DNA of 64,000 nt, from the IMG/VR virus record IMGVR_UViG_3300030108_006260, positions 1-64,000 of that record; one strand, 5' to 3'. The notes under the pieces are model-generated. The model did no database searches. It saw only the letters and a list, made by a program, of their open reading frames with translations, and was not told where the DNA came from. Both the position numbers and the translations under genes were made by a program. Shown here piece by piece: positions 8,638-57,140 of this stretch; the stretch's first letter is position 1, and each line of letters opens with the position of its first letter.

Positions 8638-8755
8638 AAGACTTTCTATTAGATGTATTGTTGGTAGATCTGGCAGGACTTGCACCTGCACTCCCGTGAG
8701 GGAACTGGGGTTTGAATCCAGCGAGTCTTCTAATTTCTCCACAGATCCTTGTCGG

Positions 8756-8843
8756 TAGGAACGGAGGGGCTCGAACCCTCAAGAGCCGTTAGGCTCACTA
8801 GATCCTTAGTCTAGCGTGTCTTCCAAAATTCCACCACGTTCCC
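8756..8843 (-). tRNA. tRNA-Leu(AAG)
   Basis: GGGAACG/CGTTCCT acceptor, A73; anticodon arm CTAGA-CTAAGGA-TCTAG; long variable arm; GGTTCGAGCCC T-loop. Confidence 0.9.
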
Positions 8844-8844
8844 G

Positions 8845-8917
8845 TAGACCCACCAGGACTCGAACCTGGAACGAACCGGTTATGAGCCGGCGACTCTAAC
8901 CATTGAGCTATGGGTCC
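8845..8917 (-). tRNA. tRNA-Ile2/Met(CAT)
   Basis: GGACCCATAGCTCAATGGTTAGAG...CCGG-CTCATAA-CCGG...GGTTCGAGTCC; paired 1:72 so elongator type, Ile2-like. Confidence 0.9.
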
Positions 8918-15074: not shown

Positions 15075-15102
15075 CTTACTATCTCCTCTGGGAGTCAGGT
15101 TA

Positions 15103-15120
15103 CTACTATGTGAAGGGTTA
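15103..15120 (-). promoter_or_regulatory. phage promoter-like motif copy
   Basis: ctactatgtgaagggtta. Confidence 0.75.
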
Positions 15121-15720: not shown

Positions 15721-15890
15721 ATGTCAGGAATACACTCGCATACCCTGTAGTGTTCTCCCTCTTCGTAGGAGGCTACAAGATGTTCACCACACATTTCCGT
15801 ACAGTCCAGGAAATCCATAGGAACTGCTTCCTGATACTTAGGCTGTGTGCATCCTATGAGGAATAACGGGAGAATTTTAATATACTTCAT
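15702..15890 (-). CDS. small Cys-containing lipoprotein
   Basis: Signal peptide with lipobox-like FLIGC. Confidence 0.55.
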   Translation of the reverse strand: MKYIKILPLFLIGCTQPKYQEAVPMDFLDCTEMCGEHLVASYEEGEHYRVCECIPDMCPGDE

Positions 15891-15894
15891 AACT

Positions 15895-16443
15895 TTACTC
15901 TACCAAATAGGAGGTATTTCCTTCCAAGAAGCTAAGTAGCTGGGCGTCACCAGAGAACTTAGCATCAATGGTTCTTTTCTTCATGACTTTGTGAGCAAAG
16001 AGGCGATGCCACCCATCGAGTACTTCTGGTACCATGAAAGTCATGTCTTCAGTAGCAAAGCATCCTACCTCCACTGGCCAGTATAGCACAGAGGGGTTCT
16101 TGATCATGTAACGAATACGTGCTGCATGCCACTCCGCAGAAGGACGTTTTCCTTCGAGCATAAGAGTATCGTAGGGTACGTCCGTATCTTCCTGTGGCTC
16201 TACTTTCTGTAGTACCATGTCTAAAGAAAATCCGCATCCCCACGGATCTTTTACTGGACTTGCGTCGTACAGTCGGTCTACTAGAAGGGATGATACTTCA
16301 TCAACTTCTGCCTCCAGAACGTTAATTTCAACTAGTCCTACTGCAATGGTTATCGCTTCTTCAGGTGTGGGTGCTTGAACTACCTTATCTATTACATCGT
16401 CTTCTGCTACTAATGTCACTAAGAAACTAGTCATCTTCGTCAT
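15895..16443 (-). CDS. protein with ParB-like domain
   Basis: EVLDGWHRL motif. Confidence 0.6.
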   Translation of the reverse strand: MTKMTSFLVTLVAEDDVIDKVVQAPTPEEAITIAVGLVEINVLEAEVDEVSSLLVDRLYDASPVKDPWGCGFSLDMVLQKVEPQEDTDVPYDTLMLEGKRPSAEWHAARIRYMIKNPSVLYWPVEVGCFATEDMTFMVPEVLDGWHRLFAHKVMKKRTIDAKFSGDAQLLSFLEGNTSYLVE

Positions 16444-16834
16444 CGTGTTCCCTACTATCAGTAGGGTCGCTCTTGGAGGTGTCCTTAAAGTACTGGAGGT
16501 CTAGGTGGAAGAAAATAACCTCCTCTACCCCTACTGAGGCATGCTCCTCGATAAGGGGAACGAGCTTTTCTACGATCTCATACCGTATCCTAGCACGCTG
16601 CTTTAGCTTCCTCACCTTCAGAAGACCCTCTACTCTCCAGTTTGTGGTACCCCCAACTACACGAAGGGTCTCAAACTCTGAAGGAACACCCTTGAGTTTG
16701 GTGTGTAGTCGTCCGGGAAAGGAATCGAGCTTTATGTTGGCGCCAAAGGACGCCCACATTCTTTCCTTAGTTGGATCGGGCATTTGTATACTTGGAGAAG
16801 AAGGCTTCCTCCTCTCCTCGATCTTTAAGCCCAA
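16427..16834 (-). CDS. hypothetical protein
   Basis: ORF on the coding strand; true start may be downstream of the listed one. Confidence 0.55.
   Translation of the reverse strand: MGLKIEERRKPSSPSIQMPDPTKERMWASFGANIKLDSFPGRLHTKLKGVPSEFETLRVVGGTTNWRVEGLLKVRKLKQRARIRYEIVEKLVPLIEEHASVGVEEVIFFHLDLQYFKDTSKSDPTDSREHDDEDD
16452..16468 (-). promoter_or_regulatory. phage promoter-like motif variant
   Basis: ctactatcagtagggtc, 8 nt upstream of the ATG at 16443. Confidence 0.55.
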
Positions 16835-17240
16835 GAAACACGCGGGTCAGACCACCCTCATATTCGTCCTTATGCTCTTCTATGTAGGACTTAACTTCGG
16901 TTGCGGTACCTCTGAATAGGGGCTGTTTCGTTTCCGTATCCCACACATCTTCAACAATGGTAACGCCACGGGATGACCTTGTTCTCGTATCAAAGTTAAA
17001 GACTCCGTACTCTGGCTTAGGGTAGTCTGGGACTTCCATGGTAGGAAGGTCCAGGCCACATAGACGAAAAGCCTCTACAACTTCTTCCCGCTCCAGTATA
17101 GGAATAACTTTTTCACTATTCTCTAGGGGAGCGTAGCCGTGGACGGCTGCCATCACAGAAGCGCCTCCTACAGAGGGGTGGTTAATCTCCCAGAAGAGCC
17201 TAAGCAACGCCAGTCGGATGGTATCTCTATCAATCTTCAT
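16767..17240 (-). CDS. hypothetical protein
   Basis: ORF with ATGA coupling to the upstream gene. Confidence 0.65.
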   Translation of the reverse strand: MKIDRDTIRLALLRLFWEINHPSVGGASVMAAVHGYAPLENSEKVIPILEREEVVEAFRLCGLDLPTMEVPDYPKPEYGVFNFDTRTRSSRGVTIVEDVWDTETKQPLFRGTATEVKSYIEEHKDEYEGGLTRVFLGLKDRGEEEAFFSKYTNARSN

Positions 17241-18394
17241 TCTGATTCCCCTTTGAGATCGGACAGAGGGAAACCCCTGTCCAGCTCTGCGTACGCCCTT
17301 GCAGCGCAGATGATTACGTCAAATAACTCTGATTTGAGGTTACTGCGACTCTTGTCTTTCTTTCTCACTTCCGCAGTAAACTCCGCTACTTCTTCTCTCA
17401 GAACACTCTCGATTTCGTGAGTAGAAGCGAAGGGACCCCACTTAGATGCTAGCTGCCTGACTTTGGAGTCTACTTCGTTAAGGAGCTTGTTTAGGGATCC
17501 TCCTAAGAAATCGAACTCATCTCTATACCCTCCATACTCTTCTGTGATACGAACAAGTTCCCTAAGGGCTTCTCTTCGTTCGGATTTTGAGCACAAGTCA
17601 TCTCTCATATTACCGTAAAGAACGTGGGCGTTTACTTCACTTAGGCCAGACATCTGCCCATCGTTAAGCTCGATTACAATCCACTCACCGCTTTTTGTTC
17701 GAGCTACATCGACCACAAAAAATCGTATCTTAGGAGCTACTCTTTTTATGACTTCATCAATAAAGTCTTGAGGGACACTGTTGACATCAGGATCAATGCT
17801 TTTTTCAGACCTGAGCCACTCCACATGTTCAGACCAGTAGAACCCCTTACCTATCACTTTTCCATCAAGAACAAAGAAGCGGTACTCCTCTGTAATAGGA
17901 ATACCCTGTATTCCCGTATCGTAGGTGTTCAGCTCTACGAACTTTCTTACGTAAATATCTTGGTACCCAATGTACCCATCCTGAGATAGCCTGCTGTACA
18001 CCCTACCTGCGTCCTCCTTGGACTCCGCAAACATATGAGTGTTCCAGCTATGCTTTTTGCTGTTTGTTGCTCCCTTCAGAACGAATGGAGCTTCGGCGGG
18101 ATCGACTTCATGAAGACGGAACCACGTTTTAGGAGTAAGGTCCTCAAGGTCATAGTACCAGTTCTTAAGGTCTGCTACGTATGCGTGTTCGCTATGTGAG
18201 TTAATGAGGCGAGATCCCAGGATCTTTATATCCTTTTCCAACTCTTTGTAGTTTGGAAGTGCTGAATATCTGGGTATAACTAGGGAATTCTGTGGGATCT
18301 CTGCTCGCTGCGTAACTACTTTAAAGTAGACACTAGCAGCATTGATTTCCTCTTGCTCTGCGAGAGCCTCCCTCATGAATACGATTGGTTTCAT
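17237..18394 (-). CDS. R2K-type ATP-grasp protein fused to a C-terminal MazG-like domain
   Basis: EYRFFVLDGKVI, FFVVDVA...WIVIELNDGQMSG (ATP-grasp); STHEIESVLREEVAEF...ELFDV (MazG-like). Confidence 0.75.
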   Translation of the reverse strand: MKPIVFMREALAEQEEINAASVYFKVVTQRAEIPQNSLVIPRYSALPNYKELEKDIKILGSRLINSHSEHAYVADLKNWYYDLEDLTPKTWFRLHEVDPAEAPFVLKGATNSKKHSWNTHMFAESKEDAGRVYSRLSQDGYIGYQDIYVRKFVELNTYDTGIQGIPITEEYRFFVLDGKVIGKGFYWSEHVEWLRSEKSIDPDVNSVPQDFIDEVIKRVAPKIRFFVVDVARTKSGEWIVIELNDGQMSGLSEVNAHVLYGNMRDDLCSKSERREALRELVRITEEYGGYRDEFDFLGGSLNKLLNEVDSKVRQLASKWGPFASTHEIESVLREEVAEFTAEVRKKDKSRSNLKSELFDVIICAARAYAELDRGFPLSDLKGESE

Positions 18395-18404
18395 GAGGGG
18401 TGTT

Positions 18405-19145
18405 TTACAGATTCTTGTCCCGGATCTCTTTCTTGGACATCTCTCTAATTTCGTAAGCAACCCTCCACCAGAGAACACGATGCCCGGTCTTGGGATCATC
18501 CTTATAGTGGGAACGACGAGGAGGAGCCCACCACTTATTATAAGTGACGCGGCGCTTCATAAGGACATCGTACTCAGACCCTCCGGGTCCCATGAGAACA
18601 AAGTCGACGCAGTACCAGCGTCCATTAATTTTGTGGTATTCAATAAAGGGCGTCTCTTCCACAATCTTCGGAGACGCCTTCTTTCTCTCCTTCTTTCTTC
18701 GCGCTCTAGCCTTAGGCGTATCGTTGTCACGAAGAATTCCGTAGGGGTCTACGTAATAACCCGTCCACTCGATTCCGTTGCGGAAAGGAAGATTACGTTT
18801 CCCCTTCCACTCGGGCTTGAGCAGAACGAAGTCATTGAGAAGGTGGTCGAAGACGTGCTTTCCCGTGGCAGTACGGGGACTGAGGCCCTCACAGATCTGA
18901 GAAAAGACCTTATCCCAAGGACGACCCACGTTCTTACGAAGAATACCCTTGAGGGGAGTGAAGTATTCGTTCAGGTACTTTCCTCCCCAGTTCTTGACAT
19001 GATGCTTCTTCATCCCTTCCCGCTTGGGAAGACGCTCCATCATGTGTTCATCATTACTTTTCCTTCGAGCAGAGCGGAAGGCATACTTTCCGCCCCCACC
19101 GTAGCGGGGGCGCTCGCACAACTCTTTGTGCAGATACTTTTTCAT
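18405..19145 (-). CDS. basic hypothetical protein, paralog of 44916-45353
   Basis: Shared LCERPR, LP.R..M, PL..(I/F)L.KNVGRPW..V.S.IC. Confidence 0.75.
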   Translation of the reverse strand: MKKYLHKELCERPRYGGGGKYAFRSARRKSNDEHMMERLPKREGMKKHHVKNWGGKYLNEYFTPLKGILRKNVGRPWDKVFSQICEGLSPRTATGKHVFDHLLNDFVLLKPEWKGKRNLPFRNGIEWTGYYVDPYGILRDNDTPKARARRKKERKKASPKIVEETPFIEYHKINGRWYCVDFVLMGPGGSEYDVLMKRRVTYNKWWAPPRRSHYKDDPKTGHRVLWWRVAYEIREMSKKEIRDKNL

Positions 19146-19163
19146 TCTGCGTTCCTCTTTCTT

Positions 19164-19325
19164 TTAGTAAAGGTCGATAACAACAACTCCCCTGTTGTCT
19201 TCTGCTTCCTCTTTATTTGGAGGGCGGGGAGCGGAGGGAATCTCTAGTTCTAGATACTTAGGGGAAACCTTTTCCTCTTTTTTCTCTCGCTTACGAATAT
19301 CTTCAATAATATGAATAGGTAGCAT
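19164..19325 (-). CDS. small acidic/Pro-rich protein (53 aa) missed by the ORF track
   Basis: MLPIHIIEDIRKREKKEEKVSPKYLELEIPSAPRPPNKEEAEDNRGVVVIDLY read by hand; preceded by GGAGG SD. Confidence 0.7.
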   Translation of the reverse strand: MLPIHIIEDIRKREKKEEKVSPKYLELEIPSAPRPPNKEEAEDNRGVVVIDLY

Positions 19326-19350
19326 GAGGCACCTCCTTGGTTAAATATAA

Positions 19351-19719
19351 TCAGTCTTCAAAGGAAGACAAGGAAGAAGGTACCTCAACAACAGAGGCCA
19401 TGTAGTCATTGACGTAGGAAGACATAGCATCCCCTTCCACCTTACGCCAAATCCACCTTCCTGCCTTGGATTCAACTCCTTCAGGGAGGTAAGTTTCAGC
19501 ATACCCCTTGTCCTCCAACCAAGCAAGGCAGTGACGAAGCTTCATGCTGCTCAAAGATCGGGCCTTAGCCCACTCTTTGAGGGAGGACCAGTGCCTCTCC
19601 CCCAAGGCGATGAACAGAGCCAAAGGAATACACACAGGACCCCAGTACGGAGAGCCGATCGCAGGGATACTAGAGTCTTCTTCGAACATGTAAAAGGTCC
19701 CTCGTGCACTACATACCAC
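19351..19719 (-). CDS. hypothetical protein
   Basis: ORF on the coding strand. Confidence 0.55.
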   Translation of the reverse strand: MVCSARGTFYMFEEDSSIPAIGSPYWGPVCIPLALFIALGERHWSSLKEWAKARSLSSMKLRHCLAWLEDKGYAETYLPEGVESKAGRWIWRKVEGDAMSSYVNDYMASVVEVPSSLSSFED

Positions 19720-20102
19720 AAACGGTACGCGTAATTCTTACAAATAATGACCTGATGCCCTATAGCACCCAGGTCAAACTAACAAAAAGCGGATGTGTAC
19801 TTCGTATGTCTTGCATGTTTCCTTACCTACGTTTTAAGTGGGAACCCCTTGATGAAGAGGAAAGCGTAGACATGGTGCGAGACGTAAGAAAAGAACTAAA
19901 GAAAAAGGGATATAGATCAAAGGTCAGAAGGAAAGTAGAGTTTGACGGTACTAAAAATCTAAACGTATTTGAGTTCCGTATCCTTCTAAAGGAAGGCGAC
20001 CTTCCTCATAACTTCATTTCTAGCCTTGAAATCCTCAAGAAAGAGGAGAGGATAAGATCGAAATCACCGAAGAAACGTTATCGTCTGTCAGACCAACTTT
20101 AG
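19704..20102 (+). CDS. basic hypothetical protein on the opposite strand (likely start near MPYSTQ)
   Basis: Fills a gap in minus-strand tiling; Lys-rich; AT-rich upstream region. Confidence 0.55.
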   Translation: MHYIPQTVRVILTNNDLMPYSTQVKLTKSGCVLRMSCMFPYLRFKWEPLDEEESVDMVRDVRKELKKKGYRSKVRRKVEFDGTKNLNVFEFRILLKEGDLPHNFISSLEILKKEERIRSKSPKKRYRLSDQL

Positions 20103-45613: not shown

Positions 45614-45790
45614 TCAGAACATAGTCGGCTTTTTATTTCTAGCCTCATCTAGTTCTGTGGACCCCGAGCTGTCTGTGTACTCGATGATACTTCTATGTAC
45701 CTTTTCGTACCTAACGATCTTGATAAGTATATTGATACATACGGTACCAACAATACTTGCTAGTGTGACTTCAATGAGCCATTCGAGCAT
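45614..45790 (-). CDS. small membrane protein (58 aa) inside the RNA array
   Basis: MLEWLIEVTLASIVGTVCINILIKIVRYEK... read by hand. Confidence 0.55.
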   Translation of the reverse strand: MLEWLIEVTLASIVGTVCINILIKIVRYEKVHRSIIEYTDSSGSTELDEARNKKPTMF

Positions 45791-45820
45791 TATTTTTATA
45801 CCTTCAAAACCGAATCAAAT

Positions 45821-45894
45821 TGGTAGCGGAACCGGGATTCGAACCCGGAACCCAAGGTTATGAGCCTTGTGAGATGCCCTTTCTCTATTCCGCA
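45821..45894 (-). tRNA. tRNA-Met(CAT), initiator-like
   Basis: T1:T72 mismatch, CAAGG-CTCATAA-CCTTG anticodon arm, encoded ACCA. Confidence 0.88.
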
Positions 45895-45980
45895 TAAGTT
45901 ACTAGTCCCGAGGGTTTTGTTCCACACGCGCCTAGCAAGCGTGTACTATAGGCTTTAGGAACTCTTTGATAGTGCCCAGG

Positions 45981-46052
45981 AGCGAGAGACCGGGGTCGAA
46001 CCGGCAACGTCTAGCTTGGAAGGCTAGCATTCTGCCATTGAATTACTCTCGC
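45981..46052 (-). tRNA. tRNA-Gly(TCC)
   Basis: GCGAGAG/CTCTCGC acceptor, U73, CTAGC-CTTCCAA-GCTAG anticodon arm. Confidence 0.92.
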
Positions 46053-46057
46053 AAAAA

Positions 46058-46196
46058 AAGAAACCGAGGTAACAATCTGTGTAACATTTATGTTCATTTT
46101 CAAGATGAATGACTTTACCATTTGTCTACATCAGCTGGTAGCTGAAGACAGGATTCGAACCTGCAATTGCGTGTAAGATTGTTTGTAAGGTTTCTT
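46058..46196 (-). ncRNA. Y-RNA-like RNA with circularly permuted tRNA (T arm, closed acceptor, D arm, TGA anticodon arm)
   Basis: Outer stems AAGAAACC/GGTTTCTT and AACAATCT/AGATTGTT; inside GCAGG-TTCGAAT-CCTGT, CTTCAGC-TACCA-GCTGATG, GAC-AAATGGTAAA-GTC, TTCAT-CTTGAAA-ATGAA. Confidence 0.8.
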
Positions 46197-46198
46197 CT

Positions 46199-46334
46199 TG
46201 GCGGAGTTGACTGGAATCGAACCAGATTTGCTTGTAAGAACTGCGAAGTAGTCACTAGGTGACTGAGTAGAAGTTCTGGGAAAAATATGCTTTCTCTAAA
46301 ATGAAAGTGGGGAACCAATCCCCTGTTCAACTCC
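46199..46334 (-). ncRNA. tRNA-like RNA carrying the conserved module in its variable arm
   Basis: GGAGTTGA/TCAACTCC-G-CCA acceptor; GGGGA/TCCCC D-like stem; AGAACT/AGTTCT + AGTCAC/GTGACT module; CTTACAAGCA; CTGG-TTCGATT-CCAG. Confidence 0.75.
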
Positions 46335-46380
46335 TAATTTTGGAAATTTTTACATCTTATCCATGATGGTAATTAATTGC

Positions 46381-46506
46381 CACTAACTGAGTTATAAATC
46401 TGATTTTGATTTGCAGCGCAGGATTTGAACCTGCTACCTTCTGAGTTTCGGTCAGATGCTCTACCAAATGAGCTAGATGCGTGTAAGATTTATTTGTTAG
46501 TTAGTG
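46381..46506 (-). ncRNA. Y-RNA-like RNA enclosing a degenerate tRNA-Phe-like body (loop CCGAAAC)
   Basis: Outer stems CACTAACT/AGTTAGTG and ATAAATCT/AGATTTAT; CTTACACGCA; D, anticodon and T arms present; weak acceptor and no CCA. Confidence 0.75.
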
Positions 46507-46509
46507 ACT

Positions 46510-46639
46510 CGGCGGGGTGTCCTGGAATCGAACCAGATTGCTTGTAAGGATTTGTGGTTGGCCTCGGATGAGGCGAGGGAAAATCCTGTGAAATATCATT
46601 TCCAAATAATGATCGGAGGGCCACCCTCCTATACACCCC
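46510..46639 (-). ncRNA. tRNA-like RNA carrying the conserved module in its variable arm (sister of 46199-46334)
   Basis: GGGGTGT/ACACCCC-G-CCG; GGAGGG/CCCTCC; AGGATTT/AAATCCT + GCCTC/GAGGC; CTTACAAGCA; identical T arm CTGG-TTCGATT-CCAG. Confidence 0.75.
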
Positions 46640-46681
46640 AGGAAGACCTACAAAGTAGGTCATAAACCTAGTATACGAGAT

Positions 46682-46785
46682 TAAAAGCTGAGTTTTTGAT
46701 GTACAATGTAGGAATCGAACCTACTACATTAAGGTTAATAGCCTTACGCTCTATCCAATGAGCTAATTGTGCGTGTAAGCTTTTA
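46682..46785 (-). ncRNA. Y-RNA-like RNA enclosing a tRNA body with ATT anticodon
   Basis: TAAAAGCT/AGCTTTTA outer stem; CTTACACGCA; GCTC/GAGC D arm; TAAGG-CTATTAA-CCTTA; GTAGG-TTCGATT-CCTAC; no CCA. Confidence 0.75.
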
Positions 46786-46807
46786 TGTTTGTTTACTAGG
46801 TGGAGAG

Positions 46808-46835
46808 AGTTTAACACGCTCTCCGAAGTTGTCAA
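46808..46835 (-). promoter_or_regulatory. sigma70-type promoter driving the RNA array
   Basis: TTGACA, 16-nt spacer, extended -10 TGnTAAACT; T-tract upstream; array begins ~20 nt downstream. Confidence 0.75.
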
Positions 46836-46844
46836 GAAAAAAAG

Positions 46845-46997
46845 TTACTGTCCTTGTCTTTTTGTTCCGCAGTACCTTGACGTATGTGACTCCTCTTTGA
46901 GTCTTGTCCAGGTTGTGTTGCGATCTTTCTTTACAAGAGCAATCGCACTCTCAACTGCATTATGTGTGGATGTTTTATTTTCTTTTTCCGAAGTCAT
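46845..46997 (-). CDS. small basic protein (50 aa)
   Basis: MTSEKENKTSTHNAVESAIALVKK... read by hand; follows the ThiF stop. Confidence 0.45.
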   Translation of the reverse strand: MTSEKENKTSTHNAVESAIALVKKDRNTTWTRLKEESHTSRYCGTKRQGQ

Positions 46998-47002: not shown

Positions 47003-47596
47003 TTAGTGAGACATAGCCCCGGCTGGATGAACAGTGTAACCTACCTTGACCCCGTCGTCAACAAATTTTTGAACAGAACGTGCAAGATAAGAAGAAGTGA
47101 TAGCGATAAAGGGGAGAAACTGCCCATCCTCGCAAGTAGCAGCGCCTTCCTGTGGTTCTGGATCGATAACAAAGTTCTCGCTCCAGACGATACGACCGAA
47201 ACTTCCTGCCCCGTCAAGGGCACCGTGAAGACAAGGAATCTCATCCTCACCTTCCTGGGGTCGACAGAAGTTCTGTACGACACTTCGTCCCTCCAGGTTA
47301 TCCAAGCAGTCTACAACAAGGTCAGCGTCGGACAAAAGCTCATAAACATTTTGGTCTGTCAACTTGTGGGGAACCACAGACAGCTTCGTACCAAAGACAA
47401 AGTTCATTGTCTGCTTTAGTCCCTGTACCTTACCTTTTCGTACGGAACCCTTAGAGTGAAACTGGGAGGCCACGTTCTTGGTCTCTACCTTGTCAAAATC
47501 AATAACGGTAAGATCGATGTCTAGGTTACGAATAAACTGAACAAGGTGAGATCCAAGGGCACCCACACCTACAACTACTACTTTCTTCTGAGACAT
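47003..47596 (-). CDS. E1-like ThiF/MoeB adenylating enzyme
   Basis: VVVVGVGALGS, VIDFDKVETKN, DLVVDCLDN; candidate catalytic Cys in GAATCEDG. Confidence 0.88.
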   Translation of the reverse strand: MSQKKVVVVGVGALGSHLVQFIRNLDIDLTVIDFDKVETKNVASQFHSKGSVRKGKVQGLKQTMNFVFGTKLSVVPHKLTDQNVYELLSDADLVVDCLDNLEGRSVVQNFCRPQEGEDEIPCLHGALDGAGSFGRIVWSENFVIDPEPQEGAATCEDGQFLPFIAITSSYLARSVQKFVDDGVKVGYTVHPAGAMSH

Positions 47597-47850: not shown

Positions 47851-47868
47851 CTACTATGAGAAGGGTTA
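47851..47868 (-). promoter_or_regulatory. phage promoter-like motif copy
   Basis: ctactatgagaagggtta. Confidence 0.75.
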
Positions 47869-48633
47869 ACCTTTGGTCGACTCCAGGAGTTCTGTTACCT
47901 TTTCTAAGTCCGTTCCCTTGCGGTTAGCGTCCCCTGTTCCCCAGCATACCCTACATACATCGTAAGTCATGGCAGCACCACCAAGTCCTCCCCGCCATGT
48001 AGAAGTGGACCCATAAAGCATGGTACCCATACCAGCACAAGAAGGACAAGGAGTAACAACACCCCTCCATGCTAAAAACTCTCGAACAGTGAGGGTCTTA
48101 TCAAGTTCTACACTATTCCTTAGTTCCCACGCAGAAGTGAGTGGAACAGTAGGATCCTTCAAATTCGAAGGATAAGGGTCTTCATGGTTCCAACGAACAG
48201 ACTCACGGGTCCCTGTCTCATACCACTCAAAGTGGAGCATATGTGTAGAGTGACCCATAATGTCAGGTCTGGCCTTCTCAGGAGGAAGAACGGGCGATAC
48301 ATTTGCCAAATGCATACCTCTACGGAGGTAGGATCCTACTTCTAGTCCTCGAACCGGCTTGACCTCTCCATAGTTCAGAACACCACTAGCACCTTCAACA
48401 AGTACAGCCTGGGTGTAAAGCCAGTGTTCTTCTCCTGGTCCTCCAGTGAAGTCCTCTATGGCTACAACAATTCCATCCTCTGCTGCAAATACCCTGGACT
48501 TTCCCGTGACATAAATGTCTATTCCTTGATGGTAGTAATACGATCTCTTATGACCAAACACACCATATTCTGATGTAAGTCTTTCCTGATTTGTGAGATC
48601 TTCGGATTTAATGGGGAATGTCCACTGAGGCAT
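47866..48633 (-). CDS. M23-family peptidase with C-terminal CxxCxGxG zinc finger
   Basis: HQGIDI (HxxxD), NYGEV, HMLHFE (HxH); CPSCAGMG / CRVCWGTG. Confidence 0.8.
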   Translation of the reverse strand: MPQWTFPIKSEDLTNQERLTSEYGVFGHKRSYYYHQGIDIYVTGKSRVFAAEDGIVVAIEDFTGGPGEEHWLYTQAVLVEGASGVLNYGEVKPVRGLEVGSYLRRGMHLANVSPVLPPEKARPDIMGHSTHMLHFEWYETGTRESVRWNHEDPYPSNLKDPTVPLTSAWELRNSVELDKTLTVREFLAWRGVVTPCPSCAGMGTMLYGSTSTWRGGLGGAAMTYDVCRVCWGTGDANRKGTDLEKVTELLESTKG

Positions 48634-48639
48634 TAGGTG

Positions 48640-49134
48640 CTACTTGTCCGTTCGTTCGAAGTCAACGAACGAAACATCTGGTGTGTTTGCCTCTTTACGG
48701 GATACTTCTTGGAACTCAGGTGGAAGAGAAGGAAAGAAGGCATCTCCCTCTGCTTCACGGTCCACAGTAGTAAGGAAAACTTTTGTAACAAGGGGCAGTG
48801 CAGCGGAATATACTGTAGTTCCACCTATAATAAACGGCACATTTTCAGAATGCCTTTTAGCAAAAGAAAGCGCATAAGACAAGGTCTTAGCTGGAACACA
48901 CCCAGAGAACTCCCTAGTGCTAGAGAGAACAATGTTTATTCTTCCCGGAAGAGGACGTCCTATCAACTCATGTGTTTTTCTTCCCATGATGACAGGAGAT
49001 CCGGTAGTAAGCGCCTTGAACCTCTTCAGATCCTCAGGAATGTGCCAAGGTAGGCCAAACTTGCCCTGGCTGTTACCTATTACACCGTTACGTCCTACCG
49101 CTACAATTAGGTTTAGAGGCTGTAGCACTATCAA
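48640..49134 (-). CDS. folA: dihydrofolate reductase
   Basis: LIVAV..NGVIG, LPWHIPEDLKRFK, VIMGRKT, RPLPGRINIVLS, IIGG, GDAFFP. Confidence 0.95.
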   Translation of the reverse strand: MIVLQPLNLIVAVGRNGVIGNSQGKFGLPWHIPEDLKRFKALTTGSPVIMGRKTHELIGRPLPGRINIVLSSTREFSGCVPAKTLSYALSFAKRHSENVPFIIGGTTVYSAALPLVTKVFLTTVDREAEGDAFFPSLPPEFQEVSRKEANTPDVSFVDFERTDK

Positions 49135-49970
49135 TCGGACTCCTTGAGGGGTTTACCGTGACTGTCTACCTTTTCTCTCGACAAGTCTGATGACACTCTG
49201 TGCTCAAAAGAAAGGTCCCACTTCCTTCTCCGTTCCTTTTCTTCCCACATATCCGCAAGAAGGCTTTCGTTAGCTAGAAGGGAGTTATAGTAGTCCGCTC
49301 GGATCTGGGGTCCGGTTTCGTCCCACCTAAGAAGCTCAGATTCACGTTCCCAGTAGTCAAAATACCTCCGTTCCATAAAACGAAGTGACTGGGGTGATTC
49401 CTGATCTTCGCGATACTTTTTAATAGCGCAGAAGATACCTCCATGATGGTCCTCGTACTCGTCCCCACTATACCAGCTAGGATTAACACCTTCTAGGTAG
49501 GGTCGCAGCTTCTCTCCGAAGAAGGTGTACTGCCCATTGCGAGAGAACGAGGCGATTGGAGTGGCGTCGTACCCGTTATCTTCCGCACAAAAGCAAGAGA
49601 AAAGAGAGATAGCCTGATCGTTACAGGACCACCCAGCTCTATAATAGGGGCTGTTCCACCCATAAATAGAGTCTACCCTCTTAGTGTGGTCATACCCAAA
49701 GTAAAATCCTTTGATGGTCCTCGTATGACGGGTCCAGTCCGTACTAGGCCAATATCCCTCTTTATCGCATGTGACTGCAAAGAGAACGTTGTGAACAGCA
49801 TCCTCCGCTTCATCATTGTAATACTGGGATACACCAAGTGTAATAGAGTTTACTTCAGGGTACATCTCAAAGAAGTGGGACAAGTACACCTTGAAGGGCC
49901 CAGTAAGATAATCCGTTCGCATACGTGATGCTTCCTCTACGGAATACCTGTGGGTGTTACTATTAGTCAT
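49131..49970 (-). CDS. hypothetical protein, paralog of 4466-5269
   Basis: YLTGPFKVY...VSQYYNDEAEDAVH. Confidence 0.75.
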   Translation of the reverse strand: MTNSNTHRYSVEEASRMRTDYLTGPFKVYLSHFFEMYPEVNSITLGVSQYYNDEAEDAVHNVLFAVTCDKEGYWPSTDWTRHTRTIKGFYFGYDHTKRVDSIYGWNSPYYRAGWSCNDQAISLFSCFCAEDNGYDATPIASFSRNGQYTFFGEKLRPYLEGVNPSWYSGDEYEDHHGGIFCAIKKYREDQESPQSLRFMERRYFDYWERESELLRWDETGPQIRADYYNSLLANESLLADMWEEKERRRKWDLSFEHRVSSDLSREKVDSHGKPLKESD

Positions 49971-50000
49971 ATTAATACTAGTTAGGATTTAAGGGATAAG

Positions 50001-50025
50001 AAAAAAGGCTACCTAAACAGTAGCC
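50001..50025 (-). terminator. intrinsic terminator after the Ubl gene
   Basis: GGCTAC-TGTTTAG-GTAGCC followed by TTTTTT on the minus strand. Confidence 0.7.
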
Positions 50026-50030
50026 AGTTT

Positions 50031-50312
50031 TCAACCGAAAGGGGTCTTTGGACGAATGCTGAAGAGAGCGAAAGGTCGTCCTTCGCTCGGGGCAAAACGG
50101 TCCACAACGAAGTCGCTGAAGTCAGCGTTTTCGTCTGCTGCGATTCCCTGCACACTACCTGCGCTCACGGCTTCCGTTACCCACATGCGAATGTCAGCAT
50201 CCGATGCGTCCACAGAAACAGGCTGTGCCATGTCTCCGTTCTGTCCTGCCCAGGTCACGTTGACCCGTGCTTCATCGCTTAGAACTTCATAATTTGTTGC
50301 CTCTTCAGTCAT
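50031..50312 (-). CDS. putative ubiquitin-like (beta-grasp) protein
   Basis: 93 aa; beta-rich RVNVTW...; ends ...IRPKTPFG with free C-terminal Gly; GGAG SD; co-occurs with E1, JAB and E2-like genes. Confidence 0.65.
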   Translation of the reverse strand: MTEEATNYEVLSDEARVNVTWAGQNGDMAQPVSVDASDADIRMWVTEAVSAGSVQGIAADENADFSDFVVDRFAPSEGRPFALFSIRPKTPFG

Positions 50313-50339
50313 ATTTAACTCCTCTATTTTAAAACCAGA

Positions 50340-50864
50340 CTAGTGGTAAACTTTAGTCTTCTTATCATTGGGGTAAAAAGAATCAAGGTGACCAGAGTCA
50401 GTCCCTTCATTCGGTTCTTGTGGATCGAATGCCATTCGAAGAAGGGCAAACTCTTTCTTGGCTACCTTATAGCTTTCTTCTTTGATACTTCTCATGTAGG
50501 CTACAAGAACATCTCTATGGCGGGGGTAGAGGCAGAGACACCATATCCCACCTATGGCCTTTACAAACTGAGTCCTGCCAGATATTCGTACAGGGAGCTT
50601 TTCTAGGTAGGTAAGTAACTCGTTTGACTCCCTTAGGTTCCAACTGATCACCAGACCGTCTATCTCTACTTCTGTTCTCTTGTTGTTCGATAAAGTTGGT
50701 CCTACGTATCGCTCGAAAAATATAGTTTCGCATGGTTCTGAATGTGTCTCATCTCTATATTCTGGATACCGAGTGTCAAGGTCATCTACTAGGTCATCTT
50801 CCATCTCTTCTGGAGCTACATGGCCCCTCAGCATTGACCCTACTAAAAGTTTCTTCCATCCCAT
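50340..50864 (-). CDS. hypothetical protein
   Basis: ORF; start set at MGWKK. Confidence 0.6.
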   Translation of the reverse strand: MGWKKLLVGSMLRGHVAPEEMEDDLVDDLDTRYPEYRDETHSEPCETIFFERYVGPTLSNNKRTEVEIDGLVISWNLRESNELLTYLEKLPVRISGRTQFVKAIGGIWCLCLYPRHRDVLVAYMRSIKEESYKVAKKEFALLRMAFDPQEPNEGTDSGHLDSFYPNDKKTKVYH

Positions 50865-50938
50865 AACACTACCCCCAGTGTACAAACACTATCATAAAAA
50901 GGGTTCAGAAGCTAGTTAAAGATAGGAAAGAGGTCACA

Positions 50939-51211
50939 CTACTCATTTTCTAAACTTCTTACCGCGTACTCGCAGCGGTTCCACGCCTTATCACCCGTAT
51001 AAAGCGGAGACGTTAGGACAATGGGCGATAGAACACCATCCTGATAAGTCCAAAGAACATCTGTAACAATCACCAACTTATCCTCTAACCACACCTTTTC
51101 ATCTTGACGTGGGATGTCTCCTGAAAAATGTATAGTATTTCCGTTGGGTGTTTTTAGTATGTAAGTCATGCTTTTCCTAAGGAATAGTGGCTGAACAAAC
51201 GAGGGGCCCAT
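50939..51211 (-). CDS. small hypothetical protein
   Basis: ORF on the coding strand. Confidence 0.5.
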   Translation of the reverse strand: MGPSFVQPLFLRKSMTYILKTPNGNTIHFSGDIPRQDEKVWLEDKLVIVTDVLWTYQDGVLSPIVLTSPLYTGDKAWNRCEYAVRSLENE

Positions 51212-52080
51212 TCCTCTAATCTAGGCTCCACACTAGCAAGAAGGCTAATTTGCGTGGACATGTTTGACCCATCAATCTCTTCAGGGTCCATGTTATTGTC
51301 GATATACTTTAGCAGAGTAATACGACGCAAACTAGAGGTGTTACTAATGTATTCTGCTACTTCTGTCTCGGTAGCACACCAAGAATCAGAGTCACGGGAC
51401 TCTCGTAGCCTACGAACTACAGACCTGCAAGCCTGATCAATGAGAAGTGTGTCACTAACTACCCCCAGCTCCAGAATGGACATTCTCACGGAGGCAACAG
51501 AAGGGTACAGGACGTTACCGAAGTAGTCAAGGGCTTCCTTGATCATTTCCTCGTTCGAGGTAGACTCCAGTGAAATATTCGCTATTTTAAACCTCACTCC
51601 GGGAGTTACGGCTCTGTAGAAAGAAGCCTCCTCTTTGTAGCGATGTATGTCTATGGCGTACTTGTCATTATCCAGAATTATCCAATTAGGACTGTATTCT
51701 GTGTGCCACCCCCTAACAGTGTATGATAGAGTCCGCAGCTTATCCAGCCAAGAAAAGTCAGCACTAAAGGGAGTTGATTTCCAGGAGCCTGCGATCTTCC
51801 TGCATACAATGATGTCCGTCTCGGAACAGATCCACCACAACAAGGACCTTCCTAGCGCCTTCTCAATGGAATCAAATGTTTCAATGTCGATCGATGAAGG
51901 TGAGGGTATGCCTGAACCAGGATGACTATGAGCGAAACCAAGAACTTGGTCTCTGTTATCCCATATCTCACTCCACAGGTCTTGAGAATCAGGAAGGTAT
52001 ACGGCAGACCTTCCTTCTGGCAGGTGCCAGTAAATAGGCTTGTTGTCTAGTCCCACAAGGACCCCTGTTTCAATACTCAT
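51166..52080 (-). CDS. JAB/JAMM (MPN+) metalloisopeptidase with C-terminal extension
   Basis: N-terminal IETG (catalytic Glu); FAHSHPGSGIPSPSSID (HxH...SxxD). Confidence 0.85.
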   Translation of the reverse strand: MSIETGVLVGLDNKPIYWHLPEGRSAVYLPDSQDLWSEIWDNRDQVLGFAHSHPGSGIPSPSSIDIETFDSIEKALGRSLLWWICSETDIIVCRKIAGSWKSTPFSADFSWLDKLRTLSYTVRGWHTEYSPNWIILDNDKYAIDIHRYKEEASFYRAVTPGVRFKIANISLESTSNEEMIKEALDYFGNVLYPSVASVRMSILELGVVSDTLLIDQACRSVVRRLRESRDSDSWCATETEVAEYISNTSSLRRITLLKYIDNNMDPEEIDGSNMSTQISLLASVEPRLEEWAPRLFSHYSLGKA

Positions 52081-52384
52081 CTCCGCGCCGACTTTCTTCG
52101 TAAAATTTGTTATTCCTAACAAGTAACAAACGGTCTGCCTCCAGTTCGGCAACAACACCCCACCACCCAATAGACTGAGATCCACTGAGCCCTTTGAGGT
52201 AGTGGACACATCCATAACGGCCATAAGAATGGGTCGATAATGTCCTAATAACTGATAGTATTAGACCGGGGGTAGCTCCCGCCATCTTAAGAGCAGTCGT
52301 TACTGATATGCGCCATGTGTCTCTCTTGGACCCATAAAATATTTCAGATACCCATTCTGCTTGCTTGTCGGACAGACTATTCAT
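52070..52384 (-). CDS. hypothetical protein
   Basis: ORF; start set at MNSLSDKQ. Confidence 0.55.
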   Translation of the reverse strand: MNSLSDKQAEWVSEIFYGSKRDTWRISVTTALKMAGATPGLILSVIRTLSTHSYGRYGCVHYLKGLSGSQSIGWWGVVAELEADRLLLVRNNKFYEESRRGDEY

Positions 52385-52592: not shown

Positions 52593-52806
52593 CTATGATT
52601 TCCTGTAGAGACTCATCAGACAGAACCACTGTCAGATTAAAGTAACTCAAAGGGCACTCCCTGATGTCTTCTAGGAGGATCTCCTGTATCATGCTCATGA
52701 CTTCAGCCTTTCCTCCCTCCCTGTAAGCCTCACGAATGTCGTCACTGCTGACATTGATAAGGTCTTCGGTCTGCTTTATCTTAAAATCGATTATTACGTC
52801 ACTCAT
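52579..52806 (-). CDS. small acidic protein
   Basis: ORF on the coding strand. Confidence 0.6.
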   Translation of the reverse strand: MSDVIIDFKIKQTEDLINVSSDDIREAYREGGKAEVMSMIQEILLEDIRECPLSYFNLTVVLSDESLQEIIDEKV

Positions 52807-53221
52807 TTCTTAGTCTACCCCTTGGGAATCCAGTCATTTTCTCTACAACTCCAGTGTAATGTGCACCATAGCTTATTTTGAGGATGGAGCCGTCACAGAA
52901 GCAAATAGAAATGTTACGATTGTTCTCTACTATGGTGTCAACTGCGGATAAGTTGATACAGACTCTCTTTCCTGACTCATGTAGATAAACACTGTGGAAT
53001 CCCGGAAGGGTCTTGAGAAGTAGCACCCCGTTTTTTGAAAGACGAACGCTTCCCTTCTTATGACGTAGCATATAGAATAAAGAATCCTTTAGTGGTTCTG
53101 GTTCCTCCGCATAAAGGATAGAGTCTGTTCGCAGGGCCATCCTGGAAACGTTGCCCCCATTTGAATAGGTCTCCACATATACAAAAGAATTTTTATTCAT
53201 AAGTCCTACCAGTGGCGCCAA
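52799..53221 (-). CDS. hypothetical protein
   Basis: ORF on the coding strand. Confidence 0.55.
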   Translation of the reverse strand: MAPLVGLMNKNSFVYVETYSNGGNVSRMALRTDSILYAEEPEPLKDSLFYMLRHKKGSVRLSKNGVLLLKTLPGFHSVYLHESGKRVCINLSAVDTIVENNRNISICFCDGSILKISYGAHYTGVVEKMTGFPRGRLRNE

Positions 53222-54701: not shown

Positions 54702-55208
54702 TTAACGAAGGTCAAAAAGGTAGAGAGTAGTTGCCCAGGAAGAAGAAAGGACATTTGGTGGCTCCTCCTCAGCTTCAAGCTCGTCACTAGACTCAATTGC
54801 TGAGTCTAGAAATCTCTTAGCGTGGAAGTACGCTTCTAGGAGTGGCCGGGTGTGGAAAGACCAGTTATTGTTGTGCTCCATCTTAAAAGAGACACCCGTA
54901 CCCTCAGACACTATTGACATAAATAGAGAGTTCATTTCCCTGTCAGGCAGAAGTGACTGGAGAGCAGAAACTATATCCTTCGTCCATTCCTGGATTCTGT
55001 ATACCTTGAAGGAGTTATGGTAGAACCTATAAAATAGGTCTGCTTCTCCCCATTCGCTCTCTACAGAGGACTTGATCTTCCTAAGATCGTCGACCTTGCT
55101 TGTAACTGCTTTGAACAGAGAAGTCTCTAAATACTTTCTAGATTCCCCGTCAAGGTGCTCTTCGGTGTAATCAAAGACAAGGGTCTCGTCTTCTTCACGT
55201 TCCGCCAT
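54702..55208 (-). CDS. hypothetical protein
   Basis: ORF; start set at MAEREED. Confidence 0.65.
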   Translation of the reverse strand: MAEREEDETLVFDYTEEHLDGESRKYLETSLFKAVTSKVDDLRKIKSSVESEWGEADLFYRFYHNSFKVYRIQEWTKDIVSALQSLLPDREMNSLFMSIVSEGTGVSFKMEHNNNWSFHTRPLLEAYFHAKRFLDSAIESSDELEAEEEPPNVLSSSWATTLYLFDLR

Positions 55209-55283
55209 TATTGTTTTTATTCTTCCAAATTTTAGGTAAAATGAAGATAGGGGAGGGTGCAAAATGTCACCATCCCCTATCTA

Positions 55284-57140
55284 TCAACTAGCAGTAATAG
55301 CCCAGGCAGGCTTCTTCAGTAGGTCGGTCTGTAGGATCTGGTCAACGAGCATAACCCGAGGGGTACGCGCTCCCTGAGAAGACACGCCAACAGGAGTGGA
55401 GGCAATAAGGTTGTGTAGGGTTCGCGGAACCTGGTACGGATCACTAAACACTGACTGCTCAACCTCAAAGCAAGGAATCTCCAGACTAGCTGCTGTCTCC
55501 GTCACGCAGTGACGCCAAGAACTTCCTACCTTAAGAAGACCAAAAGCCACAGGGTTCAATCCTGACTGTTGAACTGCACGAGGGAAGTTAGCAGCACCCT
55601 CATCACCTACGAAGATGAACAGTGCATCCTCATCTGCGCTAGGAGGGTACTTGGAAAGAAGACGAACGCCAGTAGCGTAATCGGTTCCTCCTCCGGCGCC
55701 ATACCCACGGAAGGCGGCACGTACACCTGCGTGGGAAGCATGCTGGATCTTGATCTCACGTGCTACCGTGTTGAAAACACACACGTGAACTCTGTCCAAT
55801 GGGAATGCCTGAACAAAGTTTTCCAGACATGCCTTTGCTTCATCCAGGGACTGCTGCATAGACCCCGAGATGTCTACGAAGAAGTAGATGCGCATGTTGC
55901 GGGAAACTTCTTCCACCTTCTTCTGTAGGGCAGCGTCTGCGCCTTCCTTCAGAACCTCGACAACTTCTCGTCCCTTTACGTTACGAGCAATGTTACGGGA
56001 ACGTTGGTCTTCTGCTGCACGGACTGCTGAACTCCACCGTTCCTTGATATCCTGTACCTCCAAGAGTCCAAGAGTCTCAAGGGTAGGAGTAGCAATAACA
56101 AGGTCCTTGTCAGACAAACACCCTGACTCAATGGCAGCAGCCATGACTGCGCGGGTAACACCAACCGATACAGGAACACGTGAAGTGATGACCTTGTAGG
56201 AAGGCTTCTCGGAAACAATCTTCTGACAGATCTGTTCCTCCGTTAGATCGTCCCAGGAGTCCTGCTTCTGAATCTGGACACCAAGAGCAACCTCTCGGCG
56301 ACCGTCAGGAGCTTGCTTCTGCTTCCAACGAAGAATCTGAAAGAAGTTTTCCCCTTCGGGCTTGTACCCGATGATCTGAGAGAGTCGAATAACACTCTTA
56401 CGGAAACCAGCCTTGACAAGACCCTGTAGAACAGGAGGATTCTGCTCGCGGAACCGCAACCACTTCTCTACAGCCTTGGGCCAGCGACCCAAGAAAGGGT
56501 TACGATTAGATCGACCAAATCCGAGCTGACGGTTGACCTCTGCAACACCGTCCTGAATGAGGACCTCACGGACACGAAGTAGCATCTTCGGGTTGAAGTC
56601 ACGTCGTTCCGAGCGTAGAAGTAGCATAGCCTCTCCCACGTCACGGTAGTCCTCGTCGTAGAAGAGAACTTCACCGTTCTCTACCTCAGGGTCTCCCTTT
56701 CGGGACTGGCACAGCAAGAAGGCAGCAAGAATAACCTTAAGGTCGCGATGCTCCTGGCCAAACGCATAGGAGGCCCATCGTGCAGCAAACTCATTGTCCA
56801 TTCGCCACAACTCTGCCACCTGGTTATACATCCAGTGAGCAACCTCAGGAAAGATTCCTGCTGGACGGTACTGTGCGACTACACTACGACCTTCCGTGAT
56901 AGATCCATCCTCCCCAAGAACACCTACACGAGTGCGGGTGACACGGCGGCCACTCTTAGAGAGAGCGTAGACAATCTTCTGCCCGTTCTCTTCTTTGTGG
57001 GTTACAGGGGACCAGGAAACGCCGATACGTGTGCGTCCGTCTTGCTTTACCATTCCTGGACGGTTGTGGTAAAGGTGGTCGGTATGACTTAGAAGCGACT
57101 GTAGAATTACCTCAGCCGGTCCCTTACTTTCTTGTTCCAT
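55284..57140 (-). CDS. TROVE/Ro60-like helical domain plus C-terminal vWA domain
   Basis: Clear MIDAS FFVDISGSM, GGGTDY, FVGDE; helical N-region with DNEFAARWASYA, GRWPKAVEKW, IRLSQ..YKP recalling Ro60 blocks (fold inferred). Confidence 0.65.
   Translation of the reverse strand: MEQESKGPAEVILQSLLSHTDHLYHNRPGMVKQDGRTRIGVSWSPVTHKEENGQKIVYALSKSGRRVTRTRVGVLGEDGSITEGRSVVAQYRPAGIFPEVAHWMYNQVAELWRMDNEFAARWASYAFGQEHRDLKVILAAFLLCQSRKGDPEVENGEVLFYDEDYRDVGEAMLLLRSERRDFNPKMLLRVREVLIQDGVAEVNRQLGFGRSNRNPFLGRWPKAVEKWLRFREQNPPVLQGLVKAGFRKSVIRLSQIIGYKPEGENFFQILRWKQKQAPDGRREVALGVQIQKQDSWDDLTEEQICQKIVSEKPSYKVITSRVPVSVGVTRAVMAAAIESGCLSDKDLVIATPTLETLGLLEVQDIKERWSSAVRAAEDQRSRNIARNVKGREVVEVLKEGADAALQKKVEEVSRNMRIYFFVDISGSMQQSLDEAKACLENFVQAFPLDRVHVCVFNTVAREIKIQHASHAGVRAAFRGYGAGGGTDYATGVRLLSKYPPSADEDALFIFVGDEGAANFPRAVQQSGLNPVAFGLLKVGSSWRHCVTETAASLEIPCFEVEQSVFSDPYQVPRTLHNLIASTPVGVSSQGARTPRVMLVDQILQTDLLKKPAWAITAS

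Follow-up and report, generated by a model that had tools for sequence, protein, structure and literature searches.

The Y RNAs known from bacteria and phages have their genes beside that of Ro60; the RNAs have a terminal stem with GNCGAA-type motifs, and the tRNA-like domain of YrlA is joined via the anticodon-stem position (PMC4201824, PMC12135203). The Ro60-binding motif lies on the 5' strand and reads GNCGAAN0-1G in bacteria and GGUCCGA in animals (PMC4201824). TROVE proteins are known from some jumbo phages (PMC7824862). Here, we describe five tandem RNAs (U1 to U5) that are encoded on the minus strand of a 64-kb window (positions 1 to 64,000 of IMG/VR record IMGVR_UViG_3300030108_006260; the window is the whole stretch that was examined, and minus is the sense strand of the array). 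Each RNA combines one conserved module, the handle, with a tRNA or tRNA-like body. An earlier note on this DNA had proposed that they form a Y-like RNA family bound by a TROVE-like vWA protein. We infer, with a probability of about 60%, that the tandem represents a Y-RNA-like ribonucleoprotein family, in which the handle likely docks a protein of an adjoining gene cassette and the vWA protein of 618 amino acids (aa) is the most plausible partner.

The handle had a simple layout. In minus-strand sense, its order was Q'-J-P-UACAMGCA ... P'-NNCUC-Q, with P pairing to P' and Q pairing to Q'. Its elements were the helices Q and P, a 5x5 internal loop between them in which CUC(G) is invariant, and the sequence NACANGC(A) after P. 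A pattern search of the window found CTTACAMGCA exactly five times (46168, 46229, 46478, 46539, and 46770), always on the minus strand and nowhere else, just as the earlier note had listed; when one mismatch was allowed, there were 14 matches versus a shuffled mean of 5.6. Two near-matches (8620 and 7738) lay within coding sequence, lacked the module, and were dismissed. The five units, which were tightly packed, were as follows.

46667 to 46800, minus strand: U1, a-type, a leader and a trailer that form the handle around a complete tRNA body with anticodon AUU; Q' 46794-46800, P 46778-46784, UACACGCA 46770-46777, tRNA 46700-46772, P' 46683-46689, AAUCUC 46677-46682, Q 46667-46673.
46510 to 46639, minus strand: U2, b-type, tRNA-like with a 7-bp acceptor, a G-CCG end, and the anticodon loop AUUUGGA; the handle is closed by a hairpin and sits at the variable-arm position (module 46539-46587).
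46381 to 46506, minus strand: U3, a-type, a handle around a tRNA-like body with a 5-bp acceptor and the anticodon loop CCGAAAC (C33, without U33); Q' 46499-46506, P 46486-46493, UACACGCA 46478-46485, P' 46394-46401, AACUC 46389-46393, Q 46381-46388.
46199 to 46334, minus strand: U4, b-type, tRNA-like with an 8-bp acceptor, a G-CCA end, and the 8-nt anticodon loop AUUUUAGA; the closed handle sits in the variable arm (module 46229-46277).
46057 to 46197, minus strand: U5, c-type, circularly permuted; the 5' half of the handle comes first, followed by the T arm, an acceptor stem that the loop UACCA closes, the D arm, the anticodon arm (UGA), and the 3' half of the handle; Q' 46189-46197, P 46176-46183, UACACGCA 46168-46175, P' 46071-46078, ACCUC 46066-46070, Q 46057-46065.

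All ten helices (P and Q of U1 to U5) were Watson-Crick paired and differed in sequence, as the earlier note had said of its helices. The P helices were AAAAGCU/AGCUUUU, AUAAAUCU/AGAUUUAU, AACAAUCU/AGAUUGUU, AAAUCCU/AGGAUUU, and AGUUCU/AGAACU; the Q helices were CCUAGUA/UACUAGG, CACUAACU/AGUUAGUG, GAAGAAACC/GGUUUCUUU, GAGGC/GCCUC, and GUGACU/AGUCAC. When folded, each unit formed the helices described, with z-scores of -2.1 to -3.7 versus shuffles. In U2 and U4, the tRNA-like bodies were interrupted by the module as a 49-nt insert. Some details of the note had to be revised. Specifically, it had described one helix per module where the folds show two (its coordinates for U3 and U5 already held both), and U1, for which it had given 46682-46785, is larger. 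Its (A/C)CTC patch proved real as CUC, but in the case of U1 the true patch is AAUCUC at 46677-46682, 3' of P', and not AAAAACUC, 5' of P'.

The module was then compared across related loci, which are labeled here with L-numbers (L009, L088, L200, and so on). A pattern scan of IMG/VR returned about 40 long (128- to 160-nt) tRNA-like genes of the b-type in tRNA arrays of jumbo-phage contigs. Many other matches were ordinary tRNA-Val(UAC) genes with the anticodon loop CUUACAC or CUUACAA and were set aside. An alignment of 21 b-type RNAs (U2 and U4 with homologues from other phages, 20 aligned with U2) had CUC in 21 of 21, although its members were chosen only by UACAMGCA. MAFFT aligned the b-types too roughly to yield a good consensus fold, and a covariance model was therefore made only for the a-types. 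For the a-types, an alignment of nine sequences already had compensatory changes in 26 of 31 pairs, and the covariance model built on a-type RNAs (R1) found more than 100 full-length matches in about 2.4 Mb sampled, with 65 to 129 bits in most related loci. Among 72 full-length a-types (68 distinct), 95.7% of cells were paired versus 27 to 48% with the partners slid, 29 of the 31 pairs had compensatory double changes, and the observed values were reached by no shuffle. CUC was present in 71 of these 72 RNAs and ACA-N-G was near invariant. The consensus was Q (last pair C-G) - A NNNN - P - NACANGC(A) - body - N73-(C/U/A)CA-AAnCC - P' - NNCUC - G...Q; that is, a helix Q of about 9 bp closing with C-G, a 5x5 loop of A-NNNN opposite NN-CUC, a helix P of about 8 bp, and a junction of NACANGC(A) opposite (N73)-NCA-AAnCC. 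U1 to U5 belong to a real family of structured RNAs, and covariation within it is strong.

U1 was a full-length match to R1 (119.8 bits), its body was called a tRNA by both ARAGORN and Rfam (63 bits), and the body had the form of a canonical cloverleaf (7-bp acceptor, U33 in a 7-nt anticodon loop, and free acceptor ends). U3 matched R1 with 123 bits and the Rfam tRNA model with 48.9 bits, received no call from ARAGORN, and had a fold z-score of -3.7. U4 (fold z-score, -3.6) aligned with b-type homologues, and U5 matched R1 over its full length with 35.6 bits, scored through the handle alone. A tRNA-less sixth copy that the earlier note had suspected at 45904-45963 was rejected: UACACGC and CCCUCG occur there, but not in the P/P'/Q arrangement, R1 gave no match with its filters off, and the segment folded no better than shuffles (z-score, +0.33).

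The three ways of attaching the module (acceptor end, variable arm, and around a permuted body) were present in U1 to U5 and recurred in unrelated phages. A strict motif scan over 2.37 Mb found 41 a-types, 30 b-types, 19 c-types, and 14 module-only RNAs, versus 2 open and 9 closed forms in shuffles. Fifteen further c-type genes at other loci had the order of U5, a-types elsewhere had "acceptors" of 2 to 7 bp, and the module-only RNAs carried one or two small hairpins where the tRNA would be. The AT-rich phage L088 (the L117 contig) had a homologous array with b, c, a, and b units plus module-only units. This recurrence indicated that the three topologies are a conserved property of the family. 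The anticodon loops of a-types were mostly canonical, and about half of the b-types replaced the near-universal U33 (e.g., CGGUAAA, CACAUAA, and CACCAAA); such b-types in L009 to L083 kept Tyr-, Met-, or Trp-like anticodons.

Several other unusual RNAs were seen at these loci. The homologous array of L088 contained a fourth kind of insert-bearing tRNA (minus strand, reverse-complement positions 1345-1470), whose D loop contained an inserted hairpin of about 50 nt and which lacked the ACANGC/CUC handle. The tRNA arrays of related jumbo-phage contigs also held a group I intron (L010, 1948-2178) and a transfer-messenger RNA (tmRNA) gene (L048, 5949-6306).

The bulge-helix-bulge (BHB) motif, which consists of a 3-nt bulge, a 4-bp helix, and a 3-nt bulge, is used to process intron-containing, split, and permuted tRNAs in Archaea and Cyanidioschyzon merolae. 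Like BHB-processed tRNA genes and the permuted two-piece tmRNA, the RNAs described here have one motif in leader/trailer, internal, and permuted contexts, and in the c-types, as in permuted tRNA and tmRNA genes, the 5' half follows the 3' half, with CCA often encoded in the joining loop. It is conceivable, though in our judgment unlikely, that the RNAs are unusual tRNA genes and that the module is a maturation signal for an endonuclease, perhaps with joining by a phage RNA ligase, which would give ordinary or two-piece tRNAs. The parallel in topologies is one argument for this idea, as is the location of the RNAs inside tRNA arrays under one promoter. In addition, the a-type anticodon loops were mostly CUNNNAA with many anticodons, N73-CCA stood in many trailers, N-CCA opened 6 of 16 c-type acceptor-closing loops versus about 1 in 64 expected, some bodies are already plain tRNAs in GenBank, and the window encodes an RNA ligase (7764-8402, PF09414, E 7e-30). 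On the other hand, the module is not a BHB: it has a 5x5 internal loop and an asymmetric 5/8- to 11-nt loop at its junctions, with a helix of about 8 bp between them, and its setting is bacteria and phages. Neither the cassette nor the window showed a splicing endonuclease. Furthermore, many handle RNAs cannot yield a functional tRNA. Acceptors of only 2 to 5 bp were common among phage a-types, about half of the b-types were without U33, one c-type was without an anticodon arm, and the module-only RNAs contained no tRNA; a maturation pathway does not account for the last three features. The module-only RNAs with their small hairpins make sense for a binding handle and not for a tRNA-processing signal. 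The precursor-like members may be processed into working, possibly two-piece tRNAs, and such maturation would not conflict with a role of the handle in protein binding as well.

Hammerhead and twister ribozymes occur in natural circular permutations, and the handle is likewise a compact two-helix motif that is naturally permuted, with strictly conserved unpaired ACA-N-G and CUC and a closing C-G plus A. The conserved G is position +1 of the a-type tRNA body. A small self-cleaving or self-ligating ribozyme that trims the tRNA-like RNAs at NACAN|G is one reading, but we consider it very improbable, and the positive evidence for it goes no further than the natural permutation and the conserved unpaired nucleotides. 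No Rfam ribozyme (hammerhead, twister, pistol, hatchet, HDV-like, or hairpin) was matched in 45700-46900 at E<=10, cleavage at that site in b-types would sever the variable region of the tRNA body, and the tight linkage to a protein cassette in bacteria, described below, would be unexpected for an autonomous ribozyme.

The evidence for a protein partner came from gene neighborhoods. We compared every open reading frame (ORF) of the window between 38 and 64 kb with 70 phage loci by tblastn, and only four genes were conserved; they kept the same order and strand (vWA, 320-aa, JAB, ThiF) and were followed by the RNA array.

55284 to 57140, minus strand: vWA protein of 618 aa, present in 70 of 70 phage loci.
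53206 to 54168, minus strand: coiled-coil protein of 320 aa, fold not assigned, present in 65 of 70 loci and directly after the vWA gene in most.
51166 to 52224, minus strand: JAB/MPN-domain protein of 352 aa (Pfam Prok-JAB, E 3e-5, 24.2 bits, just below the 25-bit cutoff), present in 64 of 70 loci.
47003 to 47596, minus strand: ThiF/MoeB-type E1-like adenylyltransferase of 197 aa (Pfam ThiF, E 1.6e-21), the last cassette gene, immediately upstream of the array, present in 61 of 70 loci.

The nearest PDB relatives of the E1-like protein were MoeB and Uba4. The 320-aa protein had no match in Pfam, PDB, or NCBIfam, and a PP-loop thiolase identity was dismissed on reading its sequence. PADLOC and NCBIfam gave the cassette only generic E1 or JAB names. 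In the window, the cassette was broken by nonconserved ORFs, namely a 186-aa ORF (54702-55262), a 140-aa ORF (52799-53221), and a block of about 3 kb (47866-50885) with an M23 peptidase-like gene among its contents, all on the minus strand; these interrupting ORFs were missing from most other loci.

The RNA and the vWA gene traveled together. The 618-aa protein had more than 1,400 homologues at 58 to 68% identity, and 71 viral loci were fetched by the vWA protein alone. These loci included at least 20 of the approximately 28 contigs that had been found independently by the RNA pattern. Full-length a-types (65 to 129 bits with R1) were present in about 55 of the 71 phage loci, all on the strand of the vWA gene and located 0.1 to 1.5 kb upstream or 3 to 9 kb downstream. 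RNA-positive contigs that seemingly lacked the vWA protein carried a divergent subfamily of it (22 to 28% identity by tblastn; hhalign probability 100%, E 5e-44), and this subfamily likewise adjoined RNAs.

Bacterial genomes extended this co-occurrence. A genome scan returned two groups of homologues, and the cassette was kept in both. The first group (50 to 65% identity) was on contigs of mostly Myxococcota metagenome-assembled genomes (MAGs); these are probably phage contigs that point to hosts, in agreement with the link to Myxococcota that the earlier note had made. The second group (36 to 40% identity) was on megabase-scale bacterial contigs, including a 5.9-Mb Leptonemataceae chromosome, Verrucomicrobiales and delta-proteobacterial MAGs, Labilithrix, and a Spirillospora isolate. 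Members of the bacterial group had no tRNA array; instead, R1 found one or two a-type RNAs about 70 to 700 nt from the vWA gene. The strong matches, which cover at least eight bacterial chromosomal loci, were as follows.

L200, 12391-12522: RNA in the interval that separates the vWA gene from the next one.
L196, 11841-11967: RNA beside the vWA gene.
L197: two RNA copies beside the vWA gene.
L209, L212, L221, L225, and L204: RNAs about 70 to 350 nt upstream of the vWA gene.

Weaker full-length R1 matches were found at the same position in L207, L208, L215, L216, L219, and L224; in L208, which comes from the cultured Spirillospora sp. NPDC047279, the weak candidate spans 9845-9938. A relaxed motif scan of the GC-rich bacterial loci gave too many false positives and was used only for positional clustering beside the vWA gene. 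The bacterial RNAs had the same ACANGCA and ACUCG elements, "acceptors" of 3 to 4 bp, and no CCA. No other observation argues as strongly as this arrangement that the RNA functions together with the cassette and is not a by-product of phage tRNA arrays, and single RNAs that lie beside the vWA gene with such short acceptors are likewise left unexplained by a tRNA maturation pathway. The cassette-linked RNA spans Myxococcota, Verrucomicrobiota, a Leptonemataceae MAG, and Actinomycetota (genomes and MAGs) as well as jumbo phages.

The predicted structure of the vWA protein suggested how it might resemble a known RNA-binding protein. The protein has an N-terminal beta domain (residues 29-92), helical repeats (98-412), and a vWA domain (416-581) with a MIDAS (an adhesion site that depends on a metal ion), D423xS425xS427; the AlphaFold2 model (mean confidence [pLDDT] 77) likewise showed helical repeats over about 300 residues between a small beta domain and a vWA domain with MIDAS. 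Pfam found only vWA. When the model was compared with PDB by Foldseek, Ro60/TROVE chains (9kop, 1yvp, 9nep, 9l5y, 1yvr, and 2i91) were the best and the only full-length matches; those from Thermus phage phiLo, Xenopus, and human had E values of 6e-8 to 3e-5 over 533 to 570 columns, and all non-Ro60 matches were limited to the vWA domain. A search of BFVD returned viral helical-plus-vWA proteins of 500 to 540 residues and a DUF2828 protein. At the profile level, a diverse family profile gave weak matches below threshold to Ro60 from human (E 0.005) and, in the phiLo TROVE protein, to the helical region (E 0.16), and 5 of 27 subfamily-2 members weakly matched Pfam vWA_Ro60 (best E, 0.024). As modeled, the architectural resemblance to Ro60 is solid, and true homology has roughly even odds.

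The RNA side showed a similar mixture. As in Ro60/YrlA systems, the handle RNA is encoded beside a gene for a helical-repeat plus MIDAS-vWA protein, the 5' and 3' ends of the RNA pair into a stem with conserved internal loops, a distal tRNA mimic has D and T arms, and each phage has several paralogous RNAs. However, the conserved elements of the handle RNAs are ACANGC and CUC, and a full anticodon arm remains in many bodies and a CCA end in some. The terminal stem leaves at the acceptor end (a-types) or the variable arm (b- and c-types) and not at the anticodon stem, and a closed acceptor was present only in c-types. The member nearest of all to the YrlA shape was a c-type at about 16398 (plus strand) in L114, with a T arm, a closed acceptor, a D arm, and no anticodon arm. 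On the protein side, the vWA protein has an extra N-terminal beta domain relative to Ro60, and JAB and E1-like genes stand in place of RtcB/RtcA. A cmscan of 45700-46900 at E<=10 gave tRNA and chance matches only, with no YrlA or Y RNA, and an Rfam scan of the window and 15 related loci at gathering thresholds gave no Y RNA. By the family-specific features compared (Rfam match, GNCGAA motif, junction geometry, and set of protein partners), the handle RNAs are not of the YrlA family, with which they share the principle of design. What stands of the proposed Y-like family is a new family of tRNA-chimeric RNAs that is genetically coupled to the vWA gene, more exactly to the four-gene cassette, which the earlier note had not noticed, and that most plausibly works in the manner of a Y RNA.

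These results suggested the following model. The handle would be the docking site for a protein of the adjoining cassette (vWA, 320-aa, JAB, or ThiF-type E1-like), and the tRNA-shaped part would be cargo or bait, shown by the complex to tRNA-binding factors, as Ro60 does with the tRNA-like YrlA. In bacteria, one or two RNAs lie beside the vWA gene; jumbo phages would have increased their number and transplanted the handle to various tRNA bodies, either to the acceptor end or into the variable arm, or else around a tRNA that is permuted.

A number of findings weigh against this model or against the vWA protein as its center. TM-scores to Ro60 were only 0.3 to 0.4, Pfam TROVE (PF05731) had no match in 28 plus 27 family members even at E<=10, and the N-terminal 415 residues modeled alone (pLDDT 81) retrieved only generic HEAT/ARM solenoids and no Ro60. 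The name TROVE-like describes a resemblance in architecture, with weak signals in fold and profile. Neither GNCGAAN0-1G nor GGUCCGA was found in U1 to U5 or in the first 45 nt of any of the 72 aligned a-types. Many phage members resemble real tRNA precursors, with 7-bp acceptors followed by N-CCA and canonical, diverse anticodon loops. Part of the co-occurrence in phages could be clade-level synteny, although the bacterial loci disfavor this as the whole story. Finally, phage arrays most often directly follow the E1-like gene, and the RNA-binding member of the cassette is not identifiable from linkage; any of the four proteins could be the partner.

The position of the phage arrays also raised the idea that the RNAs are substrates or cofactors of the ThiF-type adenylyltransferase and JAB protein and not of the vWA protein, for example in sulfur-relay or conjugation chemistry with the handle as a recognition element. 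ThiF-family enzymes are known to act on tRNA, as in the TcdA and Uba4/TtuC pathways, and MoeB and Uba4 are the nearest PDB relatives of the one encoded here. Nevertheless, the bacterial RNA abuts the vWA gene and not the ThiF gene, and no ubiquitin-like protein, sulfur-carrier, or PP-loop thiolase gene was found in compact cassettes. We regard this idea as quite unlikely.

A bolder form of the docking model is a new RNA-protein machine of bacteria and jumbo phages, in which a handle-borne tRNA-shaped RNA works with the E1-like enzyme and the JAB peptidase, for example as a tRNA-mimic sensor or decoy that ubiquitin-like conjugation would switch or as the acceptor when protein and RNA are conjugated, and in which phages grafted the handle onto genuine, even permuted, tRNAs. 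We put this forward tentatively, as a possibility that is more probably wrong than right. The cassette and RNA of L200 lie between housekeeping genes and a Wadjet JetC/JetD pair (14886-19742, minus strand; JetD_C and SMC-like JetC), a neighborhood that hints at a defense island and would fit a role in immunity or counterimmunity.

The RNAs form a large new family whose members are unannotated or mislabeled as plain tRNAs in GenBank. The family was not in Rfam 15, and the RNA with its cassette was not found in PADLOC, NCBIfam, or the searchable literature. When the array was compared with GenBank phages by BLAST, only the ordinary tRNA-Gly and tRNA-Met matched. The only GenBank phage with the cassette was Virus Rctr197k (L172, KX853510; 8255-8374 and 19829-19884), in which the bodies of handle RNAs are annotated as plain tRNAs (e.g., tRNA-Ala, 8275-8347) and the vWA gene is labeled "similar to conserved hypothetical protein." The family includes circularly permuted tRNA-like genes of bacteriophages and ties a tRNA-mimic RNA to an uncharacterized conserved cassette with Ro60-like vWA, JAB, and E1-like proteins. 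If the vWA protein is a remote relative of Ro60, the Ro60/Y RNA paradigm gains a new binding motif and a link to ubiquitin-like enzymology; if it is not, the pairing of a protein ring with a tRNA-mimic RNA would be an independent invention. Either way, the family offers a testable angle on the odd tRNA-like genes of huge phages. The phage T4 species 1 and 2 RNAs (rnaC and rnaD) are stable RNAs without an assigned function at the end of a tRNA cluster and are cotranscribed with tRNAs. Like them, the handle RNAs are about 120 to 140 nt long, lie among phage tRNAs, and have a T-arm-like 3' domain, which is an analogy only; rnaC and rnaD were rejected as homologues, since they lack the ACANGC/CUC handle and have no sequence or model similarity.

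The remaining features of the locus concern transcription and the surrounding tRNA genes. The array stands behind a promoter-like site and is followed directly by two ordinary tRNA genes, which are probably cotranscribed with it.

46808 to 46835, minus strand: sigma-70-like promoter, TTGACA-16 nt-TGnTAAACT, with 10 of 12 matches and an extended -10 (consensus match only).
45979 to 46052, minus strand: ordinary tRNA-Gly(UCC), directly downstream of U5.
45821 to 45894, minus strand: ordinary tRNA-Met(CAU), downstream of the array.

An equivalent TTGACA promoter was present in front of the homologous array of L088. The earlier note had given the array both a promoter and a terminator; the promoter-like site was found as described, but the sole terminator-like hairpin downstream of the array (45485-45452) has no good U run. 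The RNA ligase gene mentioned above is on the minus strand and adjoins a second tRNA cluster (8662-8917; two tRNA-Leu and one tRNA-Met), and its product may serve in tRNA repair or in the joining of permuted or split RNAs. U1 and U2 are separated by a 27-nt spacer, in which a small hairpin with perfect pairing (GACCUAC-UUU-GUAGGUC, 46645-46661, minus strand) may be a processing or pause element.

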